64,000 nucleotides of DNA from Anthoceros angustus (GCA_010909165.1 MU008164.1:1302001-1366000), one strand, 5' to 3'; counted from the stretch's first letter, positions 30,659 through 64,000 are shown. The notes: generated by a model not told the origin, from the letters alone. Program-made: numbers and translations.

Positions 30659-32314
30659 GGCTGAAGGCCTTTACCGCTTCAAATGGGCCCTGGAACCAGC
30701 GAATAACGCGGCAGGAATTAGGCTACCAGTACCCAATGAAAAAACGGTTACAAGAAGAGAACAACACAAATCTGCCTCCTGAAGCGGCATGCACGACTCG
30801 GACTCTCCACTGAGCATGTGACAAAATCTTTGAGACACGGAGCTCATACTGTCCTAAACGAGTATCACAGCTGCGCACGCTGGTAGCATCCCTTTCTGAG
30901 AAGAAGGGCTCCAGACAGCACCATAGCAGAGGGGAACGAGCAGAGCATGCCAAAAGTCAACCGTATCATCCAGGAAACCGACAGGAAAGGCAGGAACAGT
31001 GAGGAGCAAATCCCACAGGCATACATCCCCGCTGCTCTTGCCGTATGCACCATATGATTCGCCTCAACATCATTTCTGCGTCCTCCCGGAAGATGATGAA
31101 AAAAAAAGCGCGGAAAGCCGCTAAAACTACAGCATACCATCCATGCACGAGCCAGAACGCTGTCGGCACACAAATAACACCAAAACCTGTCGAACAGGAG
31201 ATCGATTCTACCTCTCCTGACCAGTTCAAACCCGTTCCTTCCACAATCGGGTGCAGGCAGACGCTTCCACGGCATCAACCGGAGCACAAACAGCACCAAC
31301 TCTTCCGGAATTCGAACAGAATCCACAACTCTGCTCATGAACCGTCCGCAAAAGATGAGATTCCTTCACTCCATTCTCCAACAATCCGCCTTAACCAGCA
31401 ACAGCACGAAGAAGGAAGCCGCTCCCGCAGAATGCAACCCTTGCAATACCTCGAATGGAATGCATTCACTCACAGCCCCCTCACACGCAGAGGCACAGGC
31501 AGCAAAGAAGCCAGTGAAACCGGCCACGAGCACACTCCGGCGGCAGCAGCAGGCCGCGCAATCCCGATTCCCGGGCCGGTGCATGCCAGCCCGCCAGGAC
31601 CAGGCCCCGCCAACCGGCCCCGCCCGCCGACATGCACGCTCAATTCAAACGCCATCCCGGAATCAAGCCGTTGGAGCCCGGCGGTCCCCGGTGGCCCGGT
31701 GGCCCGGTGGCGGCAGTTAAGGCCGCAAACGGTCGGCTCGGTTGTGTCAGCGGACGTTACGTAAGGCGTTAATTCTTAACTCCGGTTTAGCAGGCTGACA
31801 AAGAGACGTTCACCCCAATAGCGACTCACGGCGCGAGTTCGCCCGACACCGCCATTAAGATAATCACGTTTCGAAATTCGGGCCCGGAAGAACGTTTGGC
31901 CTTCGTACTCCAGAGCTCACATATATGTTCTTCTCTGGAGCCAGGAAGCCTCAACATTCCGGCTTGTTTTACCCGCCTGGAGCAAAATTGCCTGGTGGGC
32001 TGCATTGCGCGCTCTTCCACCCTTCCGCCTCCCGATTCTTCTCTGCGAGCTCCATCCATTGAGCTCGCAATTTTGCTGGGTTGTTGTGGGATTCAGCTTC
32101 GAGAAAGCGGATTTCAGCTCGGAGGACTGACTGATTTCAGCTCGGACTTCGCTTCCAAGGCACTGGTGTGCATCAATTGAGCTCGGCATTGCTGTCGCCT
32201 GCTTCTACCAGCTTGTTGCTTTGTTTGCATTTGGATATCCTCGTTGCTGACGGAAAGGCTGAGCTTGGTCTGTGGGTGTTTTTGATTTCCGGCAGAGGCA
32301 CAAAAGGAAGAACG

Positions 32315-35230
32315 ATGGCGGGGCCGGGGCCGAAAAAGAAGCTTCATGTGGAGGTGGTGAATGCGCGGGCTTTGATGCCCAAGGACGGGCAGGGATCGGC
32401 CAATCCTTACGTGACGCTGGACTACGAGAAGCAGCGGATTCGGACCAAGGTGAAGGACAAGGATCTGAACCCGACATGGAACGAGAAGTTCGAGTTCATG
32501 CTGGCGGACGGGGGAGGGGATGGGGTGCTGGAGGTGAATGTCTACAACGACAGGAAGATGGGCCGGCCGAGCGGGTTCCTTGGGAGAGTGCGAATTCCGC
32601 TCACAGACCTGGCTGTGAAGGGGAAGGAAGCAGTGAAGTACTTCAAGCTGGAGAAGCGGAGCCTCTTCTCCCACATCAGAGGCGAGATCGGGCTGAAGAT
32701 CTACACGGAAGACATCCCTCCTCCCAAGCCAGCAGCCCCGGCAGCGGGTGGAGCAGCCGCAGCTCCAGCAGCAGCTGCTGCTCCCGCTGCGGGAGCTGCC
32801 GCAGCAGCTCCCGCAGCTGCGGCAGCTGCCCCCGCAGCTGGCGGTGACAAGAAGGATGACGGAGCGAAGAAGGATCCCGAGCCCCCGAAACCGAAGCCGG
32901 AGCCGAAGATCGCAGCTTCTGTCGATCCCAAGGAGTATAACCTCAAGATGTCTGATGCCAGGCTGGGAGGAGCGGGAGAAATGCGGCAGACCCTGGCCTA
33001 CGATCTAGTGGAGGAGATGCCGTATTTGTTTGTGAAGCTGGTGAAGGCTCGGGGTCTGGCTGCCCACAAGGATGTGAAGGATGGGAATGCCACCACCAGC
33101 GATCCCTATGCAAAGATCAGTGTTGGGTCTCTGTCTGCGAAGAGCAAGACGGTGGCCAAGAGCCTGGGCCCGGAATGGAACCAGGTGTTCGCATTCTCGA
33201 AGGGGAACCTCCATGGTGGGACTCTCCAGATCGAGCTCTTCGATGAGCCGGAGAAGCCAGAGAAGGACAAGCCTGCCAAGGACCCTGAATTCCTCGGAGT
33301 GGTGATGATGGATGTTGGGGAAGTGCCTGTGAGGAAGCCTCCGGAAAGTCCCCTGGCCCCGCAGTGGTACAAGCTGGTTGGCCCGGAGAATCGTGTGAAG
33401 GGAGATGTGATGTTGGCTGTCTGGATGGGGACTCAGGCGGATGAGGCATTCCAGGATGCATGGCAGTCGGATACCGGGGGGAATCCCAACTTCAGATCGA
33501 AGGTTTACATGTCGCCTAAGTTGTGGTACTTGAGGGTGAAGATCATTGAAGCCCAGGATTTGCTCCCGGCGGAGAAGGGGAGGGTCCCGGAGCCGAGCGT
33601 CAAGACCCATTTGGGGTCTCAGACCTACAACACCAAGCCCTCCAAGAACCGGAGCACGAGTCCGTTGTGGGACGAGGATTTGATGTTTGTTGCTGCGGAG
33701 CCGTTTGAGGACGTGTTGCATTTGATGGTGGAGGATGCGGTGGGGCCGAAGAAGGAGCTGCTGGGACAGGTTAAGATACCGTTGAATACGATTGAGAGGA
33801 GGATTGATGGGAGGCAGGTTGGGTCGAGGTGGTATGTGCTGGACAAGGATGACAAGGGGCAGTATCGGGGGAGGATTCACCTTCGGTTGTGCTTTGATGG
33901 TGGGTACCATGTGATGGAGGAGAGCACCACCCACAGCAGCTGCATGAGGCCTGCTGCGAAGCAGCTGTGGAAGCCGAGTGTGGGGATGCTGGAGCTGGGA
34001 ATTCTGGGAGCTACGGGGTTGCTTCCGATGAAGACCAATGCGGTGAACAATAGGGCCAGCACTGACTCCTACTGTGTTGCAAAGTATGGGCAGAAGTGGA
34101 TCAGGACCAGAACCATCACTGAAACATTCAATCCGAGGTGGAATGAGCAGTACACTTGGGATGTGTATGATCCATGCACTGTGCTGACGGTCTGCGTGTT
34201 TGATAATCGGCATCTGGTTGCTTCTGACAAGCCGGATGCTGTGAAGGATGCTTACATTGGGAAGGTGAGGATCCGGTTGTCTACTCTGGAGAATGACAGA
34301 GTGTATACCAATCTGTATCCCCTGCTGATGCTGACCCAGTCCGGTGTGAAGAAGCATGGGGAGCTGGAGCTGGCTGTGAGGTTCTCGGTGACCTCTACTG
34401 TGAATGTGATGCAGATCTATCTCCAGCCTCCTCTGCCTCAGATGCACTACTACCACCCTCTGGACCAGACCCAGCTGGAGTTTTTGAGGAGCTCGGCCAT
34501 GAAGATTGTGCAGGGGAGGCTGGCCAGGGCGGAGCCTCCTCTGCGGGGAGAGGTTGTGTCGTATGTGCTGGATGCGGACAGCACCATCTGGAGCATGAGG
34601 AGGAGCAAGGCGAATTTTCACAGGATCCTGTCTGTGCTGTCTAGCGCCATCGGGGTGTACAAGTGGTTCCAGGACATCTGCAAGTGGGAGAGCCGGGTGA
34701 CGACGGTGCTGGTGCACGTGCTGTTTCTGATCCTGGTGTGGTACCCGGAGCTCATCCTGCCCACGGCCTTTCTGTATCTGTTTCTGATGGGCGCCTGGAA
34801 CTACCGGTTCCGGCCGCAGGCCCCGCCCTTCATGGACGCCAAGCTCTCGCAGGGGGAGCAGATCGGGGACCCCGACGAGCTGGAAGAGGAGTTCGAGGTG
34901 CTGCCCAACCAAAAGACGCAGGAGATTCTGAAGCAGCGCTACGACCGGCTGCGGAACGTAAGCAGCAAGATCCAGAACGGGCTTGGGGAGCTGGCTTCGC
35001 AGGGGGAGAGGTTCGAGGCTCTGCTCAGCTGGAGGGACCCAAGGGCTACTCTGGTGTTCGTGCTTTTCTGTCTTGTGGCTGCCGTGGTGCTCTATGTCAC
35101 TCCCTTCCGGGTGGTGGCTGTGCTGCTGGGCATCTACGTCATGCGGCCTCCCAGCTTCAGAGATCCCCTTCCTCCCCTTCCTCTCAACTTCTTCCGCAGG
35201 CTGCCATCCAAGGCAGACAGAATTCTCTAG
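32315..35230 (+). CDS. MCTP (multiple C2 domains and transmembrane region; FTIP/QUIRKY family), intronless, ~971 aa
   Basis: Four C2 domains (KLHVEVVNARALMPKDGQGSANPYV; YDLVEEMPYLFVKLVKAR; VYMSPKLWYLRVKIIEAQDL; LELGILGATGLLPMK), Ala/Pro linker after C2A, PRT_C-type end (DELEEEF, GERFEALLSWRDPRAT, NFFRRLPS). Confidence 0.95.
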   Translation: MAGPGPKKKLHVEVVNARALMPKDGQGSANPYVTLDYEKQRIRTKVKDKDLNPTWNEKFEFMLADGGGDGVLEVNVYNDRKMGRPSGFLGRVRIPLTDLAVKGKEAVKYFKLEKRSLFSHIRGEIGLKIYTEDIPPPKPAAPAAGGAAAAPAAAAAPAAGAAAAAPAAAAAAPAAGGDKKDDGAKKDPEPPKPKPEPKIAASVDPKEYNLKMSDARLGGAGEMRQTLAYDLVEEMPYLFVKLVKARGLAAHKDVKDGNATTSDPYAKISVGSLSAKSKTVAKSLGPEWNQVFAFSKGNLHGGTLQIELFDEPEKPEKDKPAKDPEFLGVVMMDVGEVPVRKPPESPLAPQWYKLVGPENRVKGDVMLAVWMGTQADEAFQDAWQSDTGGNPNFRSKVYMSPKLWYLRVKIIEAQDLLPAEKGRVPEPSVKTHLGSQTYNTKPSKNRSTSPLWDEDLMFVAAEPFEDVLHLMVEDAVGPKKELLGQVKIPLNTIERRIDGRQVGSRWYVLDKDDKGQYRGRIHLRLCFDGGYHVMEESTTHSSCMRPAAKQLWKPSVGMLELGILGATGLLPMKTNAVNNRASTDSYCVAKYGQKWIRTRTITETFNPRWNEQYTWDVYDPCTVLTVCVFDNRHLVASDKPDAVKDAYIGKVRIRLSTLENDRVYTNLYPLLMLTQSGVKKHGELELAVRFSVTSTVNVMQIYLQPPLPQMHYYHPLDQTQLEFLRSSAMKIVQGRLARAEPPLRGEVVSYVLDADSTIWSMRRSKANFHRILSVLSSAIGVYKWFQDICKWESRVTTVLVHVLFLILVWYPELILPTAFLYLFLMGAWNYRFRPQAPPFMDAKLSQGEQIGDPDELEEEFEVLPNQKTQEILKQRYDRLRNVSSKIQNGLGELASQGERFEALLSWRDPRATLVFVLFCLVAAVVLYVTPFRVVAVLLGIYVMRPPSFRDPLPPLPLNFFRRLPSKADRIL

Positions 35231-39255: not shown

Positions 39256-42200
39256 ATGGCCACAGTATGGCAACAGGACCCGCTGTGGACCCAACAAATT
39301 GGTGTGTGTACAGGGATTCTACTTGGAGCTCCAGCTCATCTCACTTTAGGGAGTGAACCCCTGGCCAACACAGCCTCCAGGTGCAGCTGTGTAAGGAGCC
39401 CAGCACTTCCGCTTCCGGTGAAACGTGTGGGTGAGGACGGGATTTCCAACGATGGTCGTCGCCAGGAGCAAGAACACTTGTGGCAACAATTTTTTCTGGA
39501 CCCTACTATGTGGTGGGATAACAGACGAGACAAGAAGAGCTCCCGTTCGCCTGACTTCCGGCGTAAGGGGTCCGGCGAGGTGCTGTGGTTGAACAACATG
39601 TTTAAGCCAGCTTGGGTTGATGAGCAGCTCATTTCCTTGGATATGCAGATGGGCCATGGTGCCTCTCCTTCCGAGTCCAGCTCTCCAGATAATCCTGAAC
39701 CTGGGAGGCGTGCAGGATCGGAAATGGGCGTCGTAACGGCTGGAACCGTGAGCTTGTTATGTCAGCAGGGGAAGCTTTCTGAGGCCGTTGGAGCCCTGGA
39801 ATCTCTGGCGCAGACAGACTCTGCTGTTTCTCAGTCTCTGTTTTACATTGTGCTAAAACTGTGTACAGCTAAGAAGGATTTGGTTGTGGGACGACGAGTT
39901 CATGATCTCAGTGTCCAACTTGGGTACGAGTCGAATGCATACTTGGGGAACCATATCTTGCGCATGTATGCAAGTGGAGGTAGGCTAGAGGAGGCCATGG
40001 ATGTGCTCACCAGAGTGGGCAAACCGGATGCCTTCATGTGGTCTTCCATAATCTCCGCATACGCTAAGCATGGGAAACCTAATGAGGCCGTACAATTGTA
40101 CCATGAGATGTGTAGGTCAGGAGTGAAGGCGGATGCTCACGTCTTTGTGGCTGTCCTTCAAGCTTGTGCATTTGCCGCTGACTTGGAATCAGGCAGAAAA
40201 GTGCACAGTGATGTGGTGCAGAGTGGCATTCCTACTAACTTGATTGTTGGCAACTGCCTGGTGGATATGTATGCAAAATGTGGTCAACTGGAAGACGCAC
40301 GCCTGGTTTTTGACAGCATGAACACAAAGGATGTGGTGACATGGAATGCCTGATTGCTGGGTATGCACAGCAAGGACTCGGACAGAGGCGCTTGTGTATG
40401 GACAAATGGAGCAGGGCCTGATTTTGGCTGACCATGTTACTTTTCTTGCCTTCTGAAGGCCTGTGCAAGCACTGGTGCCTTACAGGGCAGGCAGCTGCAC
40501 TCACAGATTGTCGAAGAGGACTGCTGGATAACGTAGTGGTGGGCAACTGCCTGGTGGACATGTATGCAAAATGTGGTGAACTGGAAGATGCACGCCAGGT
40601 TTTGACAGCATGGCCACAAAGGATGTGGTGACATGGACCGCCTGATTGCTGGGTATGCACAGCAAGGACTCCAAGAGGCGCTTGTTGTGTATGGACAAAT
40701 GGAAGAGGCGGGCCTCATTTTGGCTGACCATGTTACTTTTGCTTGCCTTCTGAAGGCCTGTGCAACTGGTGCCTTACAGAAGGGCAGGCAGCTTCACAGA
40801 TTGTCGAAGAGGACTGCTGGATAATGTAGTGTGGGCAACTGCCTGGTGGACATGTATGCAAAATGTGGTGAACTGGAAGATGCACGCCAGGTTTTGACAG
40901 CTTGGCCACAAAGGATGTGGTGACATGGAATGCCTGATTGCTGGGTATGCAGCAAGGACTCGGCCAAGGCGCTTGTTGTGTATGGACAAATGGAGCAGGA
41001 GGGCCTCATTTTGGCTGACCATGTTACTTTTGCTTGCCTTCTGAAGGCCTGTGCAAGCACTGGTGCCTTACAGAAGGGCATGCACTCACAGATTGTCAAA
41101 GAGGACTGCTGGATGACGTAGTGGTGGGCAACTGCCTGGTGGACATGTATGCAAAATGTGGTGAACTGGAAGATGCAGGTTTTGACAGCATGGCCACAAA
41201 GGATGTGGTGACATGGATGCTGATTGCTGGGTATGCACAGCAAGGACTCGAAGAGGCGCTTGTGTATGGACAAATGGAGGAGGCGGGCCTTATTTTGGCT
41301 GACCATGTTACTTTTGCTTGCCTTCTGAAGGCCTGTGGAAGCACTGGTGCCTTACAGAAGGGCATGCAACTGCACTCACAGATTGTTGAAAGAGGACTGC
41401 TGGATGACGTTGTGGTGGGCAACTGCCTGGTGGACATGTATGCAAAATGTGGTGAACTGGAAGATGCACGCCAGGTTTTTGACAGCATGGCCACAAAGGA
41501 TGTGGTGACATGGAATGCCCTGATTGCTGGGTATGCAGAGCAAAGACTCAAGAGGCGCTGTGTATGGACAAATGGAGGAGGGCCTTATTTTGGCTGACCA
41601 TGTTACTTTTGCTTGCCTTCTGAAGGCCTGTGCAAGCACTGGTGCCTTACAGAAGGGCAGGCAGCTGCACTCACAGATTGTTGAAGAGGACTGCTGGATA
41701 ACATAGTGGTGGGCAACTGCCTGGTGGACATGTATGCAAAATGTGGTGAACTGGAAGATGCACGCCAGGTTTTGACAGCATGGCCACAAAGGATGTGGTG
41801 ACATGGAATGCCCTGATTGCTGGGTATGCACAGCAAGGACTGGGCCAAGAGGCGCTTGTTCTGTATGAAAAAATGGAGCAAGAAGGGCTCATTGTAGCTG
41901 ATCATGTCACATTTGCTTGCCTCCTTAAGGCCTGTGCTTGCACTGGTGCCTTACAGAAGGGCCGGCAGCTGCACTTACTGATCCTCGAAAGAGGAGTGAT
42001 GGATAATGTAGTGGTGGGCACCTGCCTGGTGGACATGTATGCAAAATGTGGTGAACTGGAAGATGCACGCCAGGTTTTTGACAACTTGGCCACAAAGAAT
42101 CTGGTGACATGGAATGCCCTGATTGCTGGGTATGCACAGCAAGGACTCGCCAAGAGGCGCTTGTATGGACAAATGGAGGCAGGCCTCATTTTGGCTGACC

Positions 42201-43609
42201 ATGTTACTTTTGCCTTCTGAAGGCCTGTGCAAGCACTGGTGCCTTACAGAAGGCAGGCAGCTGCACTCACAGATAGTCGAAAGAGGACTGCTGGATGACG
42301 TTGTGGTGGGCAACTGCCTGGTGGACATGTATGCAAAATGTGGTGAACTGGAAGATGCACGCCAGGTTTTTGACAGCATGGCCACAAAGGATGTGGTGAC
42401 ATGGAATGCCCTGATTGCTGGGTATGCACAGCAAGGACTCGCCAAGAGGCGCTTGTGGTGTACGGACAAATGGAGCAGGAGGGCCTGATTTTGGCTGACC
42501 ATGTTACTTTTGCTTGCCTTCTGAAGGCCTGTGCAAGCACTGGTGCCTTACAGAAGGGCAGGCAGCTGCACTCAGATTGTCGAAAGAGGACTGCTGGATG
42601 ACGTAGTGGTGGGCAACTGCCTGGTGGACATGTATGCAAAATGTGGTGAACTGGAAGATGCACGCCAGGTTTTTGACAGCATGGCCACAAAGGATGTGGT
42701 GACATGGAATGTCCTGATTGCTGGGTATGGTGCTTGTGATGAAGGTCACAAGGCACTAGCTTGTTTTGAGGAGATGTTAGTTGCCGGTGTTCAGCCTGAT
42801 GATGCTACTTTTACTTGCCTTCTAGTAGCATGCAGTCATGAGGACTGGTCCACGAGGGTCGCAAACACTTTGATTCCATGGCTGAACAGCATGGCATCAA
42901 ACCTACTATTGAGCATTACACCTGCATGATTGATCTTCTTGGGCGTGCTGGCCATTTAGATGAAGCAGAGAAAATGCTTTTGACATGCGAGGGGCAAAGT
43001 AATGTTGTGGGCTTGAGGTCTTTGTTGAATGCCTGCAAAATTCACGGGGATATAGAAAGGGCTCTGTGGTGTTTCGAAAGGATTGTTAGGCTGGACCCCC
43101 AGGATGCGACCGCATATGTGCTCATGGCCAATGCCTACGCAGATGGAGGTATGTGGACCGATGTAGACAGGATTGAAACACAGAGACGGGTAGCAGGAGC
43201 TAACAAGAAGCCTGCAGTCACGACCATTGAGGTGAACAAGCAGGTACATCGCTTTGTGGTGGGAGAAAGGAGAGAGGATATTGCGCTTAAGGTAGAGAGC
43301 ACGAATGCCCGTCTGAAGCAGGAAGGAGGCCACATACCTCACACGAAATTGGTATTGAAGCCACTGTCTGAAAAGGAAAAGGAAGATGCGCTTTGTGGCC
43401 ATGCTGAGAAGCTAGCTCTGGCGTTTGGTCTCTTGAACACTCCGAGTGGGACACCTCTGATGGTAACGAAGAACCTACGCATGTGCAGTGACTGCCACAG
43501 TTCCACGGAGATCATGTCAAGGCTTGAACAGAGAGACATTGTCGTAAGGGATGGGTACCGTGTGCATCGATTCGCAGATGGTTCTTGCAGTTGTAAGGGT
43601 CGACCCTGA
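39256..43609 (+). CDS. PLS-class PPR protein with N-terminal PDF motif and C-terminal E-DYW:KP (GRP-type) deaminase; candidate U-to-C editing factor; frameshifted within the repeat array (pseudogene or assembly error)
   Basis: WWDNRRDKKSSRSPDFRRKGSGEVLWL; PLS triplets; HYTCMIDLLGRAG; KKPAVTTIEV; HAEKLALAFG; KNLRMCSDCH; CSCKGRP*. Confidence 0.85.
40240..42730 (+). repeat. near-identical ~300-bp tandem repeat (PLS triplet), 9 anchor copies
   Basis: ctgcctggtgga(c/t)atgtatgcaaaatgtgg at ~40254, 40547, 40838, 41131, 41422, 41716, 42021, 42312, 42616. Confidence 0.9.
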
Positions 43610-45200: not shown

Positions 45201-45955
45201 ATGCAGGTGCAGCCTTCTTCGTGCGCGTTGCCGGTTCTGGCTCTGCTCCTCCTCCTTGCGGCCTCGCTCTCGGTGGATGGACAGGAAGATGTCGCTCGGT
45301 CGCGGTCTTTGCTGAAGTCAGGTAAGAGGATTTCCCGCCATCGCACTAAGGAGTGACATGCTACCTGCAGATTCTTGCTCGTTGCAGTTGATTGATGAAT
45401 GCAGAACGGAGCTGCCGTGGTTCTAGGTTTTGTGTCTCCGCGTTGGAGTTGTGTTCTTGATTGCATGCGTGTGTTGCAGAGGAGAAGCCGCTCGATGGAG
45501 GAAGCAAATTCGACCGTGATTGGCACCATGGCGGCTGGGGACACCACGGAGGCTGGGGACACGGAGGCGACCGCGAGCGTCACGGCTGGGGAGGAGGAGG
45601 AGACCGCGACCGCGACCATCGCGGCTGGGGAGGGGGAGGCGGCGACGACTGGCATCACCATGGAGGATACGGAGGCGGCCATGGCGGAGGGCATGGCGAA
45701 GGAGGAGGTTATGGCGGAGGGCGTGGCGGAGGAGGAGGCTATGGCGGAGGGCATGGTGGAGAAGGCCATGAGGAAGGAGCTGGCCAAGGTACTGGCGATG
45801 GGGCTGCTGCCGGTGCTGGCGGGGAGGAGGCAAGCAGGAAGACGATGGAGCAGGTGGAGGAGGGGCCACAATATGGTGAAAACCACGGCCATGGCTGGGG
45901 CGATCACCGCCATCACCGAGGTGGCGGCCGTGGTCACCATGGCGGGCCTCCATGA
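45201..45955 (+). CDS. secreted Gly/His/Trp-rich protein (2 exons: 45201-45321, 45480-45955)
   Basis: Signal-peptide-like MQVQPSSCALPVLALLLLLAASLSVDG; phase-1 GTAAG..TTGCAG intron joins in frame to EEKPLDGG..WHHGGWGHHGGWGHGG..GGHGGGHGEGGGYGGG. Confidence 0.8.
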
Positions 45956-46098: not shown

Positions 46099-47140
46099 GA
46101 GTGTGCGCTTGTAGCTACTAATGTAAGCGCAACTTACAGATTGTAACGTTGGGTTTGTAACGTTGTTGATAGGGAGAAATCTCTAAGCGTTGTTCACTTG
46201 CTTTATCCATAAAAGTATATCTATAAAAGTAAGATTATATATAAGAATATAAAGATATATTATTTATATATAATATGAAGTTTTAAGCTTACAATATAAC
46301 TTTTTTTGCAGTTAGGTTGTAAGTGGATTAGTAATGTATCGGAAGAGGACATGGTACCCGGGTCATCTTTTGTTGACCCGATTTTTATGAATAGGTAGAT
46401 GAACACTTTCATTAAAAAGACACTACATTTGATACCAATTTGTTGGTGACTCCCACTTAAACTTGATATACCTAATGAGAAAACTAATTGCTGCTGGCGT
46501 TTGGTCCTACTCTTACAATCAAATTGCCCAATGAACTGAACCCCGATTTTTCATGGGACCCCTACACCGCTAGTTCCCATGTTCGTATGAACTCGTGGAA
46601 CGATATCTTAGTTGATGAAGCGAGTGTGCGCTTGTAGCTACTAATGTAAGCGCAACTTACAGATTGTAACGTTGGGTTTGTAACGTTGTTGATAGGAGAA
46701 ATCTCTAAGCGTTGTTCACTTGCTTTATCCATAAAAGTATATCTATAAAAGTAAGATTATATATAAGAATATAAAGATATATTATTTATATATATGAAGT
46801 TTTAAGCTTACAATATAACTTTTTTTGCAGTTAGGTTGTAAGTGGATTAGTAATGTATCGGAAGAGGACATGGTACCCGGGTCATCTTTTGTTGACCCGA
46901 TTTTTATGAATAGGTAGATGAACACTTTCATTAAAAAGACACTACATTTGATACCAATTTGTTGGTGACTCCCACTTAAACTTGATATACCTAATGAGAA
47001 AACTAATTGCTGCTGGCGATTTCGTCAGCCTACTCTTGCAATCAAATTGCCCAATGAACTGTGAACCACGATTTTTCATGGGACCCCTACACACTGCTAG
47101 TTCCCATGTTCGTATGAACTCGTGGAACAGTATCTTAGTT
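46099..47140. repeat. AT-rich ~523-bp direct tandem duplication
   Basis: gagtgtgcgcttgtagctactaatg at 46099 and 46622; near-identical through tatcttagtt. Shorter related repeats continue to ~47400. Confidence 0.9.
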
Positions 47141-49559: not shown

Positions 49560-50160
49560 TGTTTTATATTAGCCGGCGTCTCCGTAAGTTGGCGATGTAA
49601 GAAGCAAACAAGTCTTGCCTTAAGTTCAACAGAGGTGGAATATAAAGCTCTTACGGAAGCAGGTAAAGAGGTTGATTGGGAGCGCTCACTCTTAAGTGAT
49701 ATTAAATGGCTCCAACCTCAGCCTACCCTGCTTAATTGTGATAATATGTCGGCTATCGCGTTAGTCGCTAATCCTCGTTATCATGCTCGTACGAAGCATA
49801 TTGAGTTATATCATCATTATATTCGTGATATTACTTCACGAGGAGTGGTGGTGGTTGGTTATATAAATACCAAGGATAATACTGCCGATATATTTACTAA
49901 GTCTCTTCCGTCTTATAAACATAATAAATATAGAGAAGGACTAGGAGTAGTTGAAGGCAGTGACATAATCACCTTAGCAGCTGAGGAGGCAAAGTTAACG
50001 ACAAAATAACACTTTGCAAGCTTAAGTGGGAGCTATCCGAGTGACGAGAGAGGATGAAGCTAATATGCATTAGATCCAATCATCTAGTCACTTAGTACAT
50101 AGTCTTAGAAGCATGTCTTTGTGTGCCTAGAGCTGTGTGGGGAGTGTGGAGATAAAACAT
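49560..50160 (+). mobile_element. Ty1/copia retrotransposon remnant (RT end/RNase H, possible PPT)
   Basis: VSWRCKKQTSLALSSTEVEYKAL..CDNMSAIALVANPRYHARTKHIE..NTADIFTKSL; purine-rich ggggag before TG at ~50140. Confidence 0.9.
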
Positions 50161-50289: not shown

Positions 50290-50745
50290 TCACTGTTTGG
50301 GGGCCAACCCCATGCTTGAGCGCATAGAGCGAGGAGGGGAAGAGGAAGGGCAGGAGGAGGAGGAGGACAGAGTGCGGGAGGAATGCGGGGTGGTGCGGGA
50401 GGAATGCGGGGTGGTGTGGAGATCTTCGGAGAGCCGCAGCACCGGGGGAAGGGTTCGGGCAGCTGGCCGTGGTGCGCAACGGCAACTACAGGGAGCTGCG
50501 GGCGGGGGCGGCTCTGGAGGAGAACGGGTCCATCTTCAACACCTGTTCCGAGACCGAGTTTGTGCTGCACCTGATAGACACCACCAAGGCCCGGCTTCAT
50601 CGCCCGGATCGTGGACGCCTGCGAGCAGCTGGAGGGGCCCTACTCCCTCGCGTTCCTCACGGAGGACACGCTGGTGGCGGTGCGGGACCTCTAATGTGGC
50701 TTCCGCCCTCTCGTCATGGGGCAGCGGGTTGACGGTGCCGTCGTC
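50290..50745 (+). pseudogene. purF: amidophosphoribosyltransferase (purF/ASE) N-terminal fragment
   Basis: REECGVV (duplicated 18-bp unit), FGQLAVVRNGNY, LEENGSIFNTCSETEFVLHLI, IVDACEQLEGAYSLAFLTEDTLVAVRD..GFRPLVMG; internal deletion and frameshifts. Confidence 0.8.
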
Positions 50746-51822
50746 TCATTGTAGGGAACTCTGTGAGGGTTGGAGATAGTCTTGGAGGGGAGACTTGCAC
50801 GAGCAATTCAGATTAAACAGAGGAATCAAGCTGGCTGCGGCTGCAGGCGCGGGTGCGGCTGCAGTGTTAGCTTGCCCGTTCGCACGCAAATAAACGCCGT
50901 GCAAGCTGTCCGGGGAAGGGACTACATCATTGGAACTTCCGATTACATTTGCTGGATTGGAAGCAGCACATCCATTGCTCAAGTGCAGTTCCCTTCTGCA
51001 TTTTATTGTTGCGCAACAGTTGGACTTCTGAAACAAGTGGTGGGTACCCCCGGAGAAGAACGAAATACTGCTCATGAACGAGCTTCAGGCACTTAAATGC
51101 AAAGTTTCCACCATTATTAATCCATCTACTTCCTGCAATTGAGTCGGAACTGGGTGACAGCCCCACAGAAGAACAACAATGAAACCCTCATGTTTGAGAC
51201 ATCAACGCAACAAGTAGATCGCAGAGTACTTCAGTAGAATCCTTATGATCTTCCGCACATATGCACGTCTGAGTCCCTTGTTCATGTAGCGGGTCCTAGT
51301 TCCGCATATATGTGAAGTCTTTTCACCCAGTATCCCTGTCACCACTGAATGGTACCCAGGAATGTTCCGCTTTGTCTACTGTCATTTGTGAAATATAGGC
51401 AGGACTCCAGCAGTTTAAGTGAGGGACATCCTGTCACAGCCTGGGCTGGTCAGAAAGATGTAACACACATCTCGTATGCAAAAAATCTAGAAATCATTCA
51501 ACCAGAGGAATTCTTATATGGACTTCCTTCTTGAAACCAAAAGCTAGAGCTACAGTTTGACAACTCGCTGGTTTCTTCCTCCCTAACGTCCAGCGCTATC
51601 ACCTGTTCATCGACACAAGGAGGATGTGAGACGTTTCTCCTGCCAATTGCACGCGAGCCTAAACACAGATGAGCAGAAATGGAGAAATGAGAAAGATAGT
51701 ATTAGAAACAGTTTGCTGCACCAACAGCCAATTGCTGGGAACGATACCTTCAGGATCGCTGATAGAAGGCATTACAGGCTGGTTACTTATGAAGGACCAT
51801 GGCCACACCGAACTCCCGCTGG

Positions 51823-54800
51823 CTAGGTGAGTGGACTATATGGTAAAGACCAGTATAGCCCTCTTGTGAGTGTGGAGTACAACTCGGGGCACTGGAATTC
51901 CTTCTGGGGGGGCATTCCTGCTTGGCCTTGGAGCTTGTTCTCCATCTCCGTGACCTTGCCAATCACGCTTGTTAGAATGCTCAGCACATCTGCTGTTTGA
52001 GAGCCCTCAACGATGGAGTCCATCAAAGCTGTGATAAAGTTTGTGCCTTTCTCGGTATCCCTGAAGGATTTATGTCCATGACTGGTCGAGAAAAAAATGA
52101 GACAATCGCTCACAGAATGGAGGAATCGGACTTCTCCGGCTCTCTTGCTCACATATTGGCTACTCTCAACTTCAGAGTCCACGGCTTTCTTGCTTGTGAT
52201 AAGACAGCCACCGCCCCGACAAGCATTGATCACAAACACTTTAGGCTTGTTTGCAAGAAACCTGGATTCAGAGATCGGCCTCAAGATATCATCAACAACA
52301 TATAGCTTCGCACCTGCTCCACTGATAACAATGTATTCCCTTCCATCGTCTTCGATTCCCCCATGAGCATTAATGCAACACAGAAAGCAGTCGTCGTTAG
52401 CTAGGAGGGGGAGCTTCGCAAGTTGTCTAAGACGTGCTTTGATCTCCTCAGGATCGTTCACCACAACTTCGGTATCAAACATCAAGCACTTGAGAAGAGC
52501 TTCAAGTCGTCCTCTGTCTACGGCTGCTCCAGCTCTGTCCTCTTCCATGCTCACTATCACTGCCAAACCTCTCCGTCTGCCTGCTTGCACGCTGTGGTTA
52601 GGATAATTCCCAGCGATATGTTGTACTTTCTGCACTTCCCTCACATCCGGGAATAATTGTGTGGGAGTTTCCCGAGACAAGCTGCTACTGGATTTCAATC
52701 CTGCAACAACAGGCGCAACCTAAGAGTTTGCAGGGAACAACGCATACTTATGTCATGCTATTGAGAAACTACATGTGCAAAACTAGGACACATGACTGAG
52801 AGCAGCGACGAACCTTGAAACTCTGCTTCGGCTTTGGCAAGGTCCTCTCTTTGCCCCAAGATGACATGACCGTCCACCACGGTTGCAAACTCTTTGTTGG
52901 CCTTCAAAATGGGTGCCCGGTTCTGCGAGCTGTGGAAGATAGCTCTCCAAGATTGTGTGTAGTGAGCGTGGCCTTTTTCTTTTGAAGCAGCCACCTCTTT
53001 AATAAGCTTATGTGTTTGAACACACTCCTGTTTCCTGTATCTACATAACGTGAGTGATGTCACACATTCATGTCGAAGGACACCTTCAACCAATGTAACT
53101 CCTCCACAACCTTGATATGAGATACAAAATGAGCGGATTTGAGATATAATATGTTCCTGCAGAAATTCTAAGGATTTTGCGTAGCCCTGGGTTGATCGAA
53201 CTAGTATATCTATGTAACAACCTATTTCTGGATTGAATTCCACAAATACGTCAAGAAATTGAATAGATAATAGTAGAACGTTGGGCTGCAAATGTATCCC
53301 AGAGTCCATTGGATTATCCTCATCAACCCAATCATTTTTCAAACAATATGCATAGAAAAAAACCTATCATCCGTATCAACAACAAAAATTATAAGTACAT
53401 AGTTGTATAAAATATTAAGGTTTCGACGAGTCAAAAAGAAAGAAAGGGAATGAGTTGAGAATAAAGTGCACACCTGCAAACGAGGGAAAAAGCCCGGCGT
53501 GAGAAATGTGCAATCCTGATCAAGACATTGCAAACGCAAACCCATGAAGATGTAATCATGGGAATCACCACCATGTGAAGGCCATTCCAGTTGTCTATCA
53601 ACACCTACTAGGTCGCCCTTTGCATAAGTGCATACTGGTATGAAATAACGCACATGATCTTCTTCATCCCTGCTTTTGTAACAGAGGTGCAACTCAAGCA
53701 ATAGTTGGATAAACTGTTCTACACTCACAATGGTCTCAACAACCCCAATCTTGTGTAAAGACATCTTAAGAAGTTTGCTCAACTCATATTCGCTCATAAA
53801 CCCATTTTGATCTTGAAGCCAATCTCGTTCATCGCCATCTGATACTCCAAATATACTAATTAGTTGCCCAAAAACTCCCATTCCTAACCATTGGAGGTTG
53901 ATGACCATAAGCCCCGACATTTCAAAATAAATGATCTCCCCTGAATCCCTGAGGTAGGATGCTACGACTTTCCAACTATCCTCCTTTACCACGAAATCCA
54001 TGAGAAACCTTTTGCAGTCCTCCGATATTAGTGGATGACTTAATGCCACTTGGCATGTGTCATGGAACAACTCACTAAACTTACTAATAGAAATGATTGG
54101 CATACCTTGCTGATCTTCAGCCCACCTTTGTACATGTATCCTTGTTTGCTCACAAATATTGGGAATGGGGGTCAACTTTCTAATAAGTTGCTGCAACTTT
54201 TGCTCTATAGTAGTGCGTACACCATGTACATCTTTCCAATTCCGCCCATTGATGAAAGTAGGTTCATCTCCTACCTCCACCAAATCCATAAACTTTTTCT
54301 TCACCACTAACATTTCATCACATATTGCAACAAAACGTCTACCCCCTTTCAACTTGTCAGCAAATGTCACCACCACATGCACGTAAGGTTTTACCTGCTG
54401 AACTAATTGTGAATTGGAAGCAATAAACTTAAGCCAGTAAATAAATTCTTCTCTGAAATGCTTTCTATCCTTCATCTCCATGTTTGAGCCTTTCGCACTA
54501 AACTGGAATGGATTATAAACAAATAAGAACATGGACGAATTATTGACACGAGGAAAAACAAAATCATGAAGAGAGTGATACTCTCTATGCCCTGCAAGAT
54601 CCCAAACTGCAATCCTCATGGTTGGAGCATCTTTTATCACCTTCACCTCAAAGCCACGTGTTCGAGGCATATCATCTGCAATAGTTTCGCTCTCTGATTC
54701 AACACAATGTTCATGTGTTTCCATCTCCATAAATGTATTCCTTATAGTAGTCTTCCCTGAAACAACGTCATTTCATATTAATCTTACTATTTACAAAGAC

Positions 54801-57800
54801 AAGTATAACAATAAGCGACAAAACGTCCGTTGAATCTTGTCAGCCACTTTGTGTTCGCCAACATGTACATGAGAATCCGGATCATTTATGAACACGCATG
54901 AAAATCCAGAGACAAGAGAATAAAAACACAGGATGACACTTACCTGCATATGGAAATCCACAGAGTACCAGGCGGCATGATTTCACAGGCATTGTGGGAA
55001 CCCCAGCGAGAGCTCTTCGATATTCCCTGTTTTGCCGTAGTATTTCATCGACTGCAGCACCTCTTCCCTGTCTTTTCCACACAGTATTCTCAAAAGATAC
55101 ACTCTCCAAGTTGGTGTTCACCTGCAGGGCCTGCATGAGCTCTTGGAACATACCATCGTCCAACCCTTCCCAGCCATCCAAGACCAACCTTTTGAGGTAT
55201 CGACTGGTCTGCAACGACTTGAAAAACGTAATCGAGAGGTTGGATGATCCCAAACTCTCCTGAACTAGGTGTAGACTTTCCACTGTCTTGCACCTCTGCA
55301 GGATCGGCATCAACTTCCAGTAATCGTCGCTAACACTAGAGCTACCATGTCGGACTGTGAGACGATTAATGCTGCTGTTGTCGCACAACCCCTCCAATCC
55401 CTGGCTTATGAAGCAGCTAGATAGATCGAGATGCCTTAAAGTGGTGTTAAAGCGAAGCAAGCGAGCCACAGCTTCTCCCAACGCAGCGGTGACAGGCTGC
55501 TGTCCTGCTCCCCATACTTCTAGCTGGAGGTGCGTGACAGACTTGTTGACAGCAAAGGGCCTGGGAGCAACACTGGGAAGCTTCTCCTCTCCGTCCCGCA
55601 TACCAGGGGTGAATGCTCGGGCTAACAGCGTGGCCGTCATCCCGGCCTGCTCTGGGCTCCACACTCCAAATCCTATTCTCAGCGAGTCAAGTGTGGTGTT
55701 TTGCGCCAGAGCATTCCCTATCATCACTGCTCCCACCTCATCCAGCCGTATGTCCCAAATCCCAAGGTTGAGAAGTGCGGAAGTGCTAGTCAAGATTTCA
55801 GCCAGGTGTGCTGCTCCAGCACCTTCTCCTATACCCCTGTTTCCCGAAAGAGAAAATCCACGGAGCACCGTGCTGCGATTATGTCGCAGGGCTGCAGCTA
55901 TGCGACCCAGTCCATCGGCAGTCATGCCAGTGTATCCCATGTTCAGACATTGCAAGGTGCGGCTAGATTGTAAGGTAGCGGCGAGTGCGGTGCAGACTGG
56001 AGCCGCTCCAAAACCACAGTAGCCATGGAGATTCAAGTGTTCCAGTACTGCATTCGAGCTTAGGCCTTCCAAGAGTGCCGTCGCCTCTGCCACCGTCACC
56101 CTGTAAATTCGACGGCAACGAGGGTTGAGAACTATTGTTCTCAGCGTGGGGCACTTACCGATAGCTGTCATAAGGCGCAAGCGCAGGTCCCGTTCCGCCT
56201 TTGCATATTCAATATCCTCCTTGAACAAGTGCCCCAAGGCTTCCACATGAGGAAGACGAGTGAGTGTAGGCGAAGGTGAGTCCAGCTCGGTAAGCAGGGC
56301 AAGCAGGTCCGGATCCTGAGAGAGAGGAACTGGAATGGTGACATTTCCATTCGGATGTTGAGAAACAGGAGCTGGCATGGTGACAAGGAACACAGCCAAC
56401 CCGTCAATTCCCACACTGCCAGCAACAGCTAGCAGACATGCATTCAAGCATGTAGTTGCAACAACAACAGCTTGGAAGCTGGGACAAACGCAAGTATTGT
56501 GAGTAGTTTCATACCTGAGGCGCCTGAAGCCGTTGCAATGGTGGCCATCGGCGGTCGTGGCACGTCTTCAGAACCTGCGGAAGTGATCTCCCTGTGAGGT
56601 GAAAGTTTGTGGGTTCCTACAGATGCAAATCAGGACAACGATAGGTAGCTAGCTTGGGGCACCTACCCTGCCGTCCAGCGCTCCTTGTGCGTATGCTTCT
56701 TGTGAGAGCATTCTGGATATGTTTCCCCTTGCCTTCACTTTCCCAGGATGTCCCCTTGATAGAAATGTTCTCGAGGACGTTATGTCGCAGAGAGCGCATC
56801 AAGTCGTAGAACATGTAGTCATCCAACCCATCCCAGGCATCCAACACAAGCGTCCTGATGCTGCGGTTGTTGTGCAATCCTTGGAAAAACGCTTTGGTGA
56901 ACCTGGATGGACCAAAGGGCTTCATAAACTGAAACTTCAGCTCCTGAACAGACTTGCACTCCTCCAGGATGGTGATGAGGGTCGGATCCATGTCACCATC
57001 GTCCGCATGCCGCGTATGTATGACTCTGAGTTTGGTGATGCTGCTGCTTTCACGCAGCGCTCCCAATCCGCGTGTCACGAAGAAGCTGGCAAGTCCGAGC
57101 TCCCGGAGAGCACGGTTGGAGCGGATCACGCGAGCTAGGGCTTCTCCTAGCCCCGGCTCCACCGCCTCCTGGCCTCCCGGACACTCAAGAAACAGCATTG
57201 TGATGGAATGATTGGAAGCCCCGGCCCGAGGAGTCTCCCGATCTGCCGTGTGCCACACCAAAGCTTCGAGCAGTGGAATGATGAACATGGGCGCTGGCTG
57301 CTTTGGATTCCATGGGGCAGGATCTCCGATTCCAAGGCTGGTGAGTGTGGTGGTGTGCGCCAGGGCCTCTGCGATCACCACGGCTCCTTCCTCGTCCATG
57401 CCTATATCGCCAATCCAGAGAGCGCGGAGCGTGGGCGAGTTGGCGAGAATGTCGGCCAAGTGTTGCGCCCCGACAGCATTCCCGATGTGGTTCCCACAGA
57501 GAGCCAATCTGGATAGGACTGAGGTGCCATTGCGTCGAAGGCCTGCAGCGATGTAACCCAGTCCTTGTGCACTCAATCCCACATACTGCAGATTGAGGTA
57601 GTCCAATGAGCGATAAGATCTCTGGATGACGGCGGTGAGTGCCTGCACGCAGGCTGCTGTTGTCCCAAAGCCCACGAAGCTTGACAAGATCAGCTCCTGC
57701 AGCACAAGGTTGTGTTGCAAGCCTGAAAAGAGCGCCAGCGCCTCTACCTGCCTCACGCTGTAACCCAGTCTCCGCAGGGGATTCAGGTCAATCTCCCTGA

Positions 57801-59376
57801 GCGTGCGGCATTTGCCGAAGGCTGTGAGCAGGCGCAGGCGCACATCCCACTGCCACTCGCCACGGTGTTGACACTCCCCGTCTTGGCAATTGCAATCGAA
57901 GTAGCTCCCCCACAAATCCACAGAAGGGAGTTGCTGCAGCGCTGGCGAGTCGGACTCCAGGTCCGCAAGCAGCGCAAGCAGTTCCGGCTTCACTCTTGTA
58001 TCCCTCAACCTCTTGGCCAAAAGTTCGCCTTTGCCATGCTTTTCCCACGAGGTGCCCTTAATGGAGATGTGCTCCAGCTTGGTGTTGGTGGACAGAGATT
58101 GGATCAGCTCTTGAAACATGTGGTCGTCCAGCCCATCCCAGCTATTCAACACCAGCTTCTTGATGCAAGGCTTGTTGTGCTTCAACCCCTGGAACAACTC
58201 CTCGGTGAAGTTGCTACGCCCGTAGGGTTTCAAAAACCCGAACTGCAGCATTCGAAGCTTCACGCACTTGTGCAAGATAGGCATCAGCACAGGATCCAGC
58301 TCCTCCTCATCCAGGGAATGGCCGTGCTCCAGTACAAGGTGCGTGATGCTGCTGTTGTAAGCCAGTGCGGACAAGCCGCGCGTCACAAAATAGCTGCTTA
58401 CGTACAGGAGCTTCAAGGTGGTGTTGGAGTGCAGCATTCCAGCCACCGCTTCTTCGAGCCTACCCTCCACAGGGCTGCCATCCTCACCTCCCGGCAACCC
58501 GGATACTTCAAGCCATAACTGGGTGATGGATTGGTTAAGGGCAGCAGTAGCACATGTGAGACTGTGAGACTGCAACTCCGACCAGCTCGAGGAGGGCACA
58601 CCGCTACGGGGGCTCAAGGCACGCAAGATAGGAATCAACATAGCTGCCTGCTCAGGATTCTTGTGCCGGTCATATCCGATATCAAGCCTGTCGAGCGTGG
58701 TGGTGAGCGCCACAGCCTCTGCAATCAGCCCGGCGCCCTCATGGTCCATGCCTATCCCAAACAGTCCCAAGGTTCGCAGAGCAGGCGAGTGGGTGAGGAT
58801 GGCGGCAACGTGCCGCGCCCCGGCAGCGTTCCCTATCATATCGTTGTCGTCAAGATACAACTTGCTGAGTAGTGAGCCGCTGCTCTTGTCTCGCAAGGCT
58901 GCGGAGATATGAGCCAAGCCTTCCACACTCAGCCCAATTGCCCGCATATCCAGATACTCCAACCTGCAACCGGGTCGCAGGACGGCAGCAGCGAGTGCAA
59001 TGCACGCTTCCGTCGTCCCGAATCCTCCGAACCCGTACAAGCTCAGGTTTTCCAGCGCTGGATTGTGCTGCAACCCCTTCAGCAGCGCTGTTGCCTCCAC
59101 GTCGCTCACGCTGTACTTCCCACGCTTCCTCAAGGGATTCAGATCGATGGTTCTCAGGCTTCTGCAGTTGCCGATCGCGCTCATGATGCGCAAGCGCAGA
59201 TGGCGCCTCGATTTCCCCAAAGCTTCATGTTCGCCGGCGTTCAAGAAGTAGGAGCCCCAGGAAGCCGCAGCATCCGGAGGAGGAAGCGCAGTGACGCTCG
59301 GCGACTGGGACTCGAGGCTCTCCAGCAGGGCAACCAAAGCGGCAGGAAGAGGAGGAGGAAGAGGCTGCTCCGCCAT
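51823..59376 (-). CDS. 3x LRR(RI-like) - Roc GTPase - COR - caspase fusion protein (TORNADO1-like Roco-caspase), predicted 2302 aa
   Basis: Exons 59376-56667, 56574-56515, 56371-54944, 54756-53474, 53363-52814, 52700-51823 (6909 nt, in frame). All five introns GT-AG, 92-187 bp. Roc GFPYAG|KTT, RTRGFEV, WDLAGHREY, VTFADK; COR FLTPGFFPRLQV; caspase AHG and NACRG. A shorter 1381-aa model from ATG 56378 is also possible. Confidence 0.8.
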
Positions 59377-61491: not shown

Positions 61492-62170
61492 ATGCTAACA
61501 AAGAAGTGCAAGAGCTATGCGATTTCTACAGGACTCCGAAAAGAGCAAGCAATATTACAATTCCAGCTATTACAAATGCCGAAGACACAAGCATTGAGTT
61601 TTTTGGGTTTAAGACCATGGCTAGGAAGGAAGGGCCTAGGACAAACCATGCAAACTGCTTGGAGCACAATTTTCACAAAATATATGTTTATGCTTTTGTG
61701 GCCAAACTTAGTTGAAATAGCATTAGTTCAATGCACCAACACGGCTCGTTCCGAAAGTAGGAGTAGTGGATATATTTGTTCTTAATCACAAGAGAGAATT
61801 GAGTGCCCTTCTTTTTTTTTTAAATGGCTCTAGGCCTCTGGTTTTTACAAAAAGAGTCTCATTGATACTTTATTGATATTAAAAAATGTCTTGAGATTTA
61901 TTTTTTCAGGAAAAAAGAGTTTCCAGCCTCCACCCTAGAATTTATTTACCGAGTGCTGTAACGGAGATGAGAGCTGAGGGCTACTATATTTGATGTCATG
62001 TAAAGAGACACCACTGATCCATATAAAGATTCGCACATTAATGTACTATGTGACTTGTGACAAGTTGCACGAAAAAGTAGACTTGTAGCTTGCAGAGCAC
62101 GCCAGTGAAGCAAGTAGTGCACGCCAGCCAGCGAAGCAAGAGTGAAGCAAGTAGTGCACGCCTGCAACGC

Positions 62171-62340
62171 ACATTGCTCTTCCAAGTCTATTTATAATCA
62201 GCCTAAAGTAGAGATGGCATTCCATATACATTGCTCTACCAAGTCTATTTATAATCAGCCTAAAGTAGAGATGGCATTCCATATACATTGCTCTACCAAG
62301 TCTATTTATAATCAGCCTAGAGTAGAGTGGACGGCATCCC
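62171..62340. repeat. 57-bp tandem repeat x3
   Basis: acattgctct(a/t)ccaagtctatttataatcagcct at 62171, 62228, 62285. Confidence 0.9.
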
Positions 62341-62539: not shown

Positions 62540-63570
62540 CAATGTGAGCTGGGTTGAGAACTTTTGAGGCAGGTTCTTGCCAAGTCAGTGGAAGCATCGC
62601 TCGTTCATCTCACCAACACTACCGTCGGCATGCAGACTGCAGTACAGGCTAGATAGGATTCCTTTGCCGTGTGATGCCGTCAAGGTAACGCTGTCCTTGG
62701 ACCCAGTCATGACAAGCTGCAGTCAGCTTTCCACAAAGTACCGGTCGATGATGTCCCAAGAGTTGCACGTACGCTGGGGATGTGCCACACAACAGCTGAG
62801 ACCTTGTGTTCCGTTTGTGACGGAAGCTTTTCCGGACAGGAGGCAGAGGGATAGCAATCCTTGGTTGCTGGAGTCTCGTAGAAAATGGATTAGCTAGACT
62901 ACCTCTGTGTGTAGCCTGGCACGGGCATCACAGCTTGTACGCTGGTGATGCTAATATGCAGGGTTCATTACTTCTGAGGGGAGACAGGTAGCCTCATGAC
63001 GGACCTTCGGACAGAGATGAGGATACCGAGCCATTTATAACCAGTCTACAGTAGACATGGGCATATGTATCATTCCTAGAGAACTGTCACAAGGCAGATG
63101 CTTGTGAGTGGCTTTCAGGACCGGTACACTGTATCTCTTGTGGACCACGGCCCTCCCATGAGAGGATGAATGCTGGCAATACCAAGGTGTGGTCAGAGTT
63201 TCATAGTTTCGAGGCGAGTCATCCACCCTCAAGCCGTACAACGTGAGCTGTGTTGACAACTTGAGGCACGTTTTTGCCAAGTCAGTCAAGCACCGCTATT
63301 TCATCTCACCAACACTGCAGTGCAACCCAGATAGATTCCTCTGCAATGTGATGCTGCCAAGGTTGACGCTGTCCTTGAACGCTGCCAGGCAGCTTCCCAG
63401 AGAGTCATGCAACCCATTGATTTCCTACCAGCTGCACTTAGTGCTTTGCCACAACGCTGCGACCTTGTGTTCCGTTTGTGATGGAAGAGGAGGCAGAGGA
63501 ACAAGAATGCTTGGTTGCTCAAGTCTCTTAGAAAATGGATCTATGTACATATAGCCCTGGCACGGGCATC
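62540..63570. repeat. diverged direct duplication (62540-62930 ~ 63235-63570)
   Basis: Shared gtacaa..gtgagctg..ttgccaagtcagt..tcatctcaccaacact..gaccttgtgttccgtttgtga..gaaaatggat..tggcacgggcatc. Confidence 0.75.
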
Positions 63571-63589
63571 CGTGGCCATGGAAGCCACT

Positions 63590-64000
63590 AGGAACGCCAG
63601 AGCTACCTTCTCAGCGTGCCCACCACAAAGTACATCTTCCTCTTCCTTCTCACCCCGTGGCGTCAACACCAACTTCGTGGGAGGTACGTGGCCCCCTTCC
63701 TGCTTCAGACGTGCACTCGTGCTCTCTACCTTAAGCGCAATATCCTCTCTTCTTCCACCCACTAGAAATCGATGTGCCTGCTTTCTCACCTCATAGTTGC
63801 CACTGCAGGTTTCTTGTTAACTCCTGCTACCCTTCTTCTTGTTTCATCAATCCTGTCCACATCGGTCCACCTACCTGCATCTGCGTAGGCATTGGCAATG
63901 AGAACATATGAGGGCGCCTCGTGGGGGTCCAGCCTAACAAAGCTTTCGAAACACCAGATTTCCCCCTCTCTATCCCCGTGACATTCGCAGGCATTCAACA
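63590..64000 (-). pseudogene. truncated E-DYW:KP PPR paralog (continues beyond window)
   Basis: NACECHGD..WCFESFVRLDP..KKPAVAT / HRFLVGGRREDIALKVESTSARLKQEGGHVP..LCGHAEKVALAF, closely related to 43030-43430; frameshift near 63790; lacks CxxC and GRP. Confidence 0.85.

Follow-up and report, generated by a model that had tools for sequence, protein, structure and literature searches.

A hornwort locus predicted to encode a leucine-rich repeat Roco GTPase with a C-terminal caspase domain

The DNA analyzed here (the window) is a stretch of 64,000 nucleotides (nt) from Anthoceros angustus (GCA_010909165.1, MU008164.1:1302001-1366000), counted from its first letter. Its minus strand carries, from 59376 to 51823, a gene predicted to encode a leucine-rich repeat (LRR) sensor, a Roc-COR GTPase of the Roco type and a caspase domain. 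Six exons of 2710, 60, 1428, 1283, 550 and 878 nt, each continuing the open frame of the preceding one, sum to 6909 nt. They are separated by five introns of 92, 143, 187, 110 and 113 nt, all GT...AG and with matching phases (1, 1, 1, 0 and 1); the sole stop is the last codon, and the predicted protein has 2302 amino acids (aa). The initial annotation had joined the exons through these same introns into one stop-free coding sequence, and checking exon by exon confirmed this, together with its observations that intron 3 splits the P-loop (the cut falls within a Gly codon) and that intron 5, in phase 1, joins COR in frame to the caspase exon (COR-B to exon 6). Its claim of a single LRR-Roc-COR-caspase chain holds in part: Roc-COR-caspase stands, on conserved introns 3 and 4 and on relatives with both parts in one open reading frame (ORF), whereas the join to exon 1, which holds LRR modules 1 and 2, is plausible. 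The GC content of third codon positions (GC3) along the gene (51823-59376) runs from 0.69 in exon 1 through 0.54, 0.40 and 0.38 to 0.51 in exon 6. Exons were searched and folded singly, and all structural results refer to single exons rather than to the joined 2302-aa chain. Coordinates are collected in Table 1.

Table 1. Exons, introns, domains and motifs of the Roco-caspase gene, in window positions
Feature	Position	Strand	Remarks
Exon 1	56667..59376	-	Start codon, LRR modules 1 and 2; open frame
LRR module 1	about 59346-58021	-	Exon 1, 12 repeats
LRR module 2	about 57990-56677	-	Exon 1, 12 repeats
Intron 1	56575..56666	-	GT-AG, 92 nt; predicted; alternative acceptor at 56592
Micro-exon	56515..56574	-	60 nt, linker; holds ATG at 56548, possible start of a shorter gene
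Intron 2	56372..56514	-	GT-AG, 143 nt; in-frame ATG at 56378; alternative acceptors 56330, 56316
Exon 3	54944..56371	-	LRR module 3 and first half of Roc P-loop (from 54959)
LRR module 3	about 56297-55005	-	Exon 3, 12 repeats; aligns with LRR tail of relatives
Intron 3	54757..54943	-	Phase 1, within P-loop Gly codon
Exon 4	53474..54756	-	Roc GTPase and COR-A
Roc G1	spans intron 3; K-T at 54754	-	Motif alignment
Roc G2 RTRG	54664	-	Motif alignment
Roc G3 WDLAG	54604	-	Motif alignment
Roc G4 TFAD	54367	-	Motif alignment
Intron 4	53364..53473	-	Phase 0, after FFPRLQ
Exon 5	52814..53363	-	COR-B, dimerisation half of COR; aligns with Sphagnum COR-B
Intron 5	52701..52813	-	Phase 1, separates COR-B from caspase
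Exon 6	51823..52700	-	Linker, caspase domain, stop codon
Catalytic His H112 (A-H-G)	52363..52365	-	Sequence alignment
Catalytic Cys C160 (N-A-C-R-G)	52219..52221	-	Sequence alignment
Candidate self-cleavage Asp 174 (A-V-D/S)	52177..52179	-	Inter-subunit linker, low-confidence model loop; aligned with caspase-8 linker Asp; putative

Exon 6 matches Pfam Peptidase_C14 with an E value of 4e-31, and caspase-8 leads its sequence matches in the PDB. The model of this exon (predicted local distance difference test, pLDDT, 90) shows six core strands with the dimer strand at the C-terminus; it was built from 88 sequences, an alignment rich in animal-type rows, which may lean it toward animal caspases. 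Animal caspases and cFLIP account for the top eight structural matches. Z scores against caspase-8, -3 and -9 are 27.5-27.9 (caspase-8: Z 27.9, root-mean-square deviation 1.7 Å over 208 residues), that against MALT1 being 21.6 and those against Arabidopsis metacaspases 18.9 and 17.8. In exon-6 numbering R55, H112, G113, C160, S211 and R213 are kept. Both arginines of the S1 pocket (caspase-1 Arg179, Gln283 and Arg341) are present; the Gln is Asn (N158), as it is in 11 of 14 rows of the clade described below. By fold, catalytic dyad and Asp-pocket arginines we class the domain as a true caspase (C14A), with predicted Asp specificity and putative self-cleavage. A metacaspase was considered and rejected, given the Z score of 18.9 versus 27.9 to caspase-8, an S1 pocket that is basic rather than acidic, and a fold without the two extra strands. 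A word-index homolog search with the caspase exon gave no match, and a metagenome scan returned 25 short, distant caspase loci, none with Roc-COR.

Exon 4 alone matches Pfam Roc at 28.4 bits (cut-off 27; E 2e-6) and, weakly, COR-A (E 4e-4, below the Pfam cut-off). Exon 5 has no Pfam match; it aligns, up to window position 52806, to the stretch of Sphagnum proteins that Pfam assigns to COR-B, so that COR follows directly after Roc, collinear with the COR-A and COR-B of these proteins. Motifs G1 to G4 are all present; the comparison set for exon 4 comprised 28 relatives. A PDB sequence search with exon 4 found nothing significant. No exon has a Pfam match to NB-ARC or NACHT: the switch is Roc, and any likeness to nucleotide-binding LRR (NLR) proteins is one of logic alone. 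The effector and switch named in the initial annotation are thus borne out, the former by Peptidase_C14, the caspase-8-like fold, the His-Cys dyad and both Asp-pocket arginines, the latter as TORNADO1 (TRN1)-type by the Roc match, G1-G4 and the alignment with Sphagnum TRN1-type proteins. Of the domains it led us to expect (LRR_RI, Roc, COR and Peptidase_C14), Pfam returned Roc and Peptidase_C14; COR-A was weak, exon 5 gave nothing, and the LRRs were recognized by fold and motifs.

That the Roc-COR and caspase parts belong to one gene is well supported, because introns 3 and 4 are conserved and because COR and caspase share an ORF in plant-like sequence data. Intron 3 has the same position and phase in the related sequences L001 and L006, and intron 4 the same position in L001, L002 and L006, which are contigs from a second organism. 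Regions corresponding to exon 5 (COR-B) and exon 6 (caspase) lie in one ORF in P0002, P0005 and P0051; L001 carries an LRR tail, Roc-COR, COR-B and caspase in that order; and in L036, from a different run, COR-A, COR-B and caspase follow one another with intron 4 absent at the same junction and with small frameshifts. The same fusion is present in two independent runs. The Sphagnum TRN1-type proteins align to 52806 and then diverge into a different tail of about 300 aa. A stand-alone caspase gene was rejected as unworkable, because translation of an unspliced exon 5 would end at 52760 and exon 6 has no Met before residue 51, which lies beyond core strand 1. As an aside, L036:1-1717 is an intronless COR-caspase contig whose several small frameshifts could mark an error-bearing transcript, a pseudogene that is transcribed, or a retrocopy.

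Exons 1 and 3 together make up three tandem LRR modules of about 450 aa, 43-52% identical to one another (42-43% by tblastn), with 12 LRR strand motifs in each and 36 repeats in total. A single-sequence AlphaFold model of exon 3 (pLDDT 65.5) matches the LRRs of ribonuclease inhibitor and NLRP proteins. The modules are under purifying selection (dN/dS 0.30-0.37), and exon 1 is therefore coding whichever gene model applies. On their concave face, positions vary more than the other non-core positions do (identity 0.31 versus 0.44, p about 0.004; p 0.014 when polar positions are the reference).

How exon 1 is attached is less firmly drawn. By approximate weights of our own, donor 56514 ranks as strong, within about the top 1% of the GT sites of the gene, and donor 56666 as moderate (about the top 5%). 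Three in-frame routes lead from exon 1 to exon 3: the one tabulated, one through 56592 and 56316, and a direct splice, 56666-56372. Two internal start codons are possible, ATG 56548 and ATG 56378, and exon 1, if read through, reaches a stop at 56617 and forms a complete 919-aa ORF. The exon 1 - micro-exon - exon 3 join is plausible, and exons 1-6 are probably one single long gene. The same fusion might instead belong to a shorter gene of about 1400 aa, starting at ATG 56548 or 56378 and retaining one LRR module, with exon 1 a separate LRR-only gene ending at 56617; this arrangement, which would be compatible with the mechanism proposed below, we consider the strongest competitor, albeit an unlikely one. 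It would account for the complete 919-aa ORF, the good context of both ATGs, the merely moderate donor at 56666 and the single LRR module carried by the relatives examined (Sphagnum, L006). It would have to fit the end of one gene and the beginning of the next into the 70-240 nt between the stop at 56617 and these ATGs, where the common poly(A) and TATA hexamers tested are all absent; modules 1 and 2, moreover, already share one frame, so stacking of modules does take place, and several in-frame splice routes are available. A word-index homolog search with exon 1 found one unrelated oomycete LRR protein and no full-length relative with stacked LRR modules.

In a quick tree of 88 caspase domains, unrooted and with most rows unlabelled, the window sequence falls in a group of 15 rows (SH-aLRT 99) that includes Marchantia polymorpha, M. 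paleacea, Riccia fluitans and the hornwort Nothoceros aenigmaticus, the best identity being 37-38%. A pattern-based search of limited reach found no relative of this clade in 185,579 prokaryotic genomes. Because the caspase groups with liverworts and Nothoceros, and because C2-PRT_C and PPR-E-DYW genes are present in the same window, an origin in land plants, as opposed to contamination, is well supported by these comparisons; the moss-like Roc-COR agrees with it, and the Nothoceros relatives suggest that the plant is probably a hornwort. This placement also led us to reject animal contamination.

NB-ARC-LRR sequences are immediately preceded by caspases of this clade in L003:591-6749, L004, L005:10001-18614, L007:1855-12643, L008, L009, L039 and L040, mostly with an ORF for a SERAC1/DUF676-like hydrolase in between (in tandem in L007); we regard these as candidate caspase-hydrolase-NLR genes. 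Among annotated liverwort proteins, P0010 (Marchantia Mp6g00860, Mp6g00900), P0019 (M. paleacea) and P0049 (Riccia fluitans) have an intact C-terminal caspase of the clade. In Marchantia the clade caspases follow an alpha/beta hydrolase, and the liverwort members can be used in a model plant. The L001 and L002 paralogues may represent sensor/helper or cFLIP-like pairs. In L006:1395-5706, an LRR-Roc-COR gene, introns 3 and 4 are kept but the tail is not a caspase; the C-terminal end thus differs between members of a single sample.

It is induced dimerisation that activates initiator caspases. We propose that the locus is a native bryophyte gene for an immune sensor, switch and protease in one chain, activated through COR dimerisation, a reading whose chances we hold to be evenly balanced. 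The gene would derive from a TORNADO1-type LRR-Roc-COR gene by replacement of the C-terminal tail with a caspase domain and triplication of the LRR module. In this scheme the LRR solenoid would bind a molecule from a pathogen or a host protein that has been altered, and binding would shift the nucleotide state of Roc, whose motifs are present. As judged from the biochemistry of Roco proteins and caspases, COR-COR dimerisation would then pair the caspase domains, as adaptors do for caspase-8 and -9. The dimer, which has the residues needed, might cut its own linker at Asp and afterwards substrates that contain Asp, with defence signalling or cell death as the outcome.

COR mediates the dimerisation of Roco proteins (PMC4104024), and the best-studied of them, that of Chlorobium, is monomeric when bound to GTP and dimeric when bound to GDP or free of nucleotide (PMC5714945). 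If the window protein behaves likewise, the active dimer would carry GDP or no nucleotide, and GTP may turn it off instead of on; by this analogy GDP may mark the active state, or the LRRs may hold a resting dimer inactive. Since the caspase would report dimerisation directly, the protein offers a clean read-out of which nucleotide state of Roc-COR is "on."

The immune reading counts in its favor the intact frame, the caspase fold and kept residues, the one-ORF fusion elsewhere, the clade linked to NB-ARC-LRR sequences and the variable LRR face. The last two fit an immune gene family without proving it. The bacterial LRR-Roc-COR-caspase proteins (PMC8195603) and the brown algal ROCOs (PMC11378527) have likewise been proposed as immune receptors. 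Several observations weigh against it. A search of the window, a limited test, found no gene for a caspase substrate. The residue after G3 is His where most relatives have Gln (His is found likewise in P0151). Among the three modules compared, pN at face positions (0.45) is lower than pS (0.77), which is no signal of positive selection. L001:516-2198 has decayed Roc motifs beside an intact caspase, and L002:694-1977 has Gly for the catalytic Cys. Finally TRN1, the only characterized plant Roco, acts in development, namely in leaf patterning (PMC4104024).

This role of TRN1, and the fact that the closest relatives of the Roc-COR part are moss TRN1-type proteins, would suit a developmental protease, that is, a TRN1-like function in patterning or in the programmed death of particular cells with the caspase as a regulated processing enzyme and no part in immunity. 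We think this unlikely, the tail of TRN1 having been replaced here and the triplicated LRRs with their variable face and the NLR-linked relatives of the caspase fitting arms-race genes better. Less likely again is a scaffold or weak enzyme, whose caspase fold would bind or pair with family members as cFLIP does, or would cut after residues other than Asp. Clade members that have lost the catalytic Cys or His do exist (P0005, P0014, P0030), and Asn stands in place of the Gln of QACRG; that Asn is, however, typical of the clade, and this protein, like most other members, retains the dyad, the oxyanion Gly and the two S1 arginines. A recent pseudogene that has not yet decayed, or an unexpressed copy, we judge improbable in view of 6.9 kb free of stops and frameshifts, canonical splice sites throughout and a full set of key motifs. 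Animal contamination or a chimeric assembly has next to no chance of being correct: insect caspases are among the best named single matches and GC3, at 0.69 in exon 1, is down to 0.38-0.40 in the Roc-COR exons, but the caspase clusters with those of Marchantia, Riccia and Nothoceros and separates from the other (mostly unlabelled, animal-type) rows, the Roc-COR part is moss-like with conserved introns, plant-type PPR-E-DYW and C2-PRT_C genes lie in the same window, and the fusion recurs in both runs.

A wider scheme, with this gene as an intact one-chain receptor, can also be entertained, which we offer tentatively and on balance doubt. Bryophytes may possess their own lineage of true Asp-specific caspases mounted on several immune sensors (Roco-LRR and hydrolase-NB-ARC-LRR). 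The Roco nucleotide cycle would switch the caspase on and lead to cell death, possibly through a gasdermin-like substrate, as an inflammasome-like pathway that seed plants lack.

Elsewhere in the window, an intronless gene at 32168-35230 (+) encodes a 1020-aa multiple-C2/PRT_C (MCTP-type) protein. PPR genes with E and DYW parts, of the plant RNA-editing type, lie at 39256-43609 (+) and 63541-63998 (-), the latter with E and DYW in different frames. Near 45250-45330, ahead of a Gly/His-rich repetitive ORF at 45461-45955 (+) that possibly encodes a glycine-rich wall protein, another ORF holds a stretch resembling a signal peptide. Positions 46099-47140, in AT-rich DNA, hold a tandem duplication of about 520 nt, near-perfect apart from small indels, either a recent duplication or an assembly artefact. 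By eye, 49635-50009 (+) and 50469-51096 (+) resemble fragments of a copia RNase H end and of an amidophosphoribosyltransferase pseudogene, with no Pfam match, and a 57-nt unit is repeated in three tandem copies at 62149-62327.

The design as such is already known from bacteria, whose predicted LRR-AP-GTPase (Roc)-COR-effector proteins bear a caspase among at least 24 kinds of C-terminal effector (Kaur et al. 2021, PMC8195603). Many paralogues occur per genome, and a role in countering invaders has been proposed from prediction (PMC8195603). The domain order of the caspase-bearing members is the same as that of the window gene. These systems are prokaryotic, whereas the Roc-COR of the window gene is of the plant TRN1 type with plant introns, and the fusion therefore looks independent of the bacterial one.

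The C-terminal peptidase of a further group, the ROCOs of stramenopiles, alveolates and Rhizaria (SAR), belongs to IPR009003, which we take to be the trypsin-like clan, and is not a caspase as in the window gene. In brown algae and other SAR lineages these LRR-ROC-COR proteins are expanded as candidate immune receptors; a small group carries the IPR009003 peptidase, and a caspase is never mentioned (PMC11378527). The fold, dyad, Arg-lined S1 pocket, linker Asp and long N-terminal part of animal initiator caspases (caspase-8, caspase-9, CED-3 and Dronc) are shared by the window protein. Unlike them it lacks DED and CARD, has sensor and dimeriser in the same chain, reads NACRG rather than QACxG and belongs to a separate bryophyte clade. 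With plant metacaspases and the MALT1 paracaspase the window caspase has the clan CD fold and dyad in common; it differs from metacaspases in its basic S1 pocket, in a chain that ends after strand 6 and in a lower structural match.

Plants are said to lack canonical caspases (PMC12521494), and plant Roco proteins are described as LRR-Roc-COR only (PMC4104024). No description of a plant Roco-caspase was found in the literature searched, which lies largely outside the subscription journals. The earlier claim that this architecture is undescribed in plants therefore stands within that literature and needs the qualification that the same layout had been predicted in bacteria (PMC8195603); as far as our search reached, the predicted plant Roco-caspase is new. 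An intact Roco-fused caspase gene in a land plant would contradict, for bryophytes, the view that plants lack canonical caspases (PMC12521494), and the fusion would extend the LRR-Roc-COR-only picture of plant Rocos (PMC4104024). With plant TRN1 the window gene shares the order of ribonuclease inhibitor-like LRR, Roc, COR-A and COR-B, and it is 29-33% identical to Sphagnum TRN1-type proteins. TRN1-type proteins, as represented in this comparison by Sphagnum P0202 and P0217, have one LRR module and a non-protease tail of about 300 aa, where the window gene has three modules and a caspase instead. What the locus adds is this triplicated LRR sensor with an intact reading frame, and, the gene copy being unbroken, it can be cloned and tested directly.

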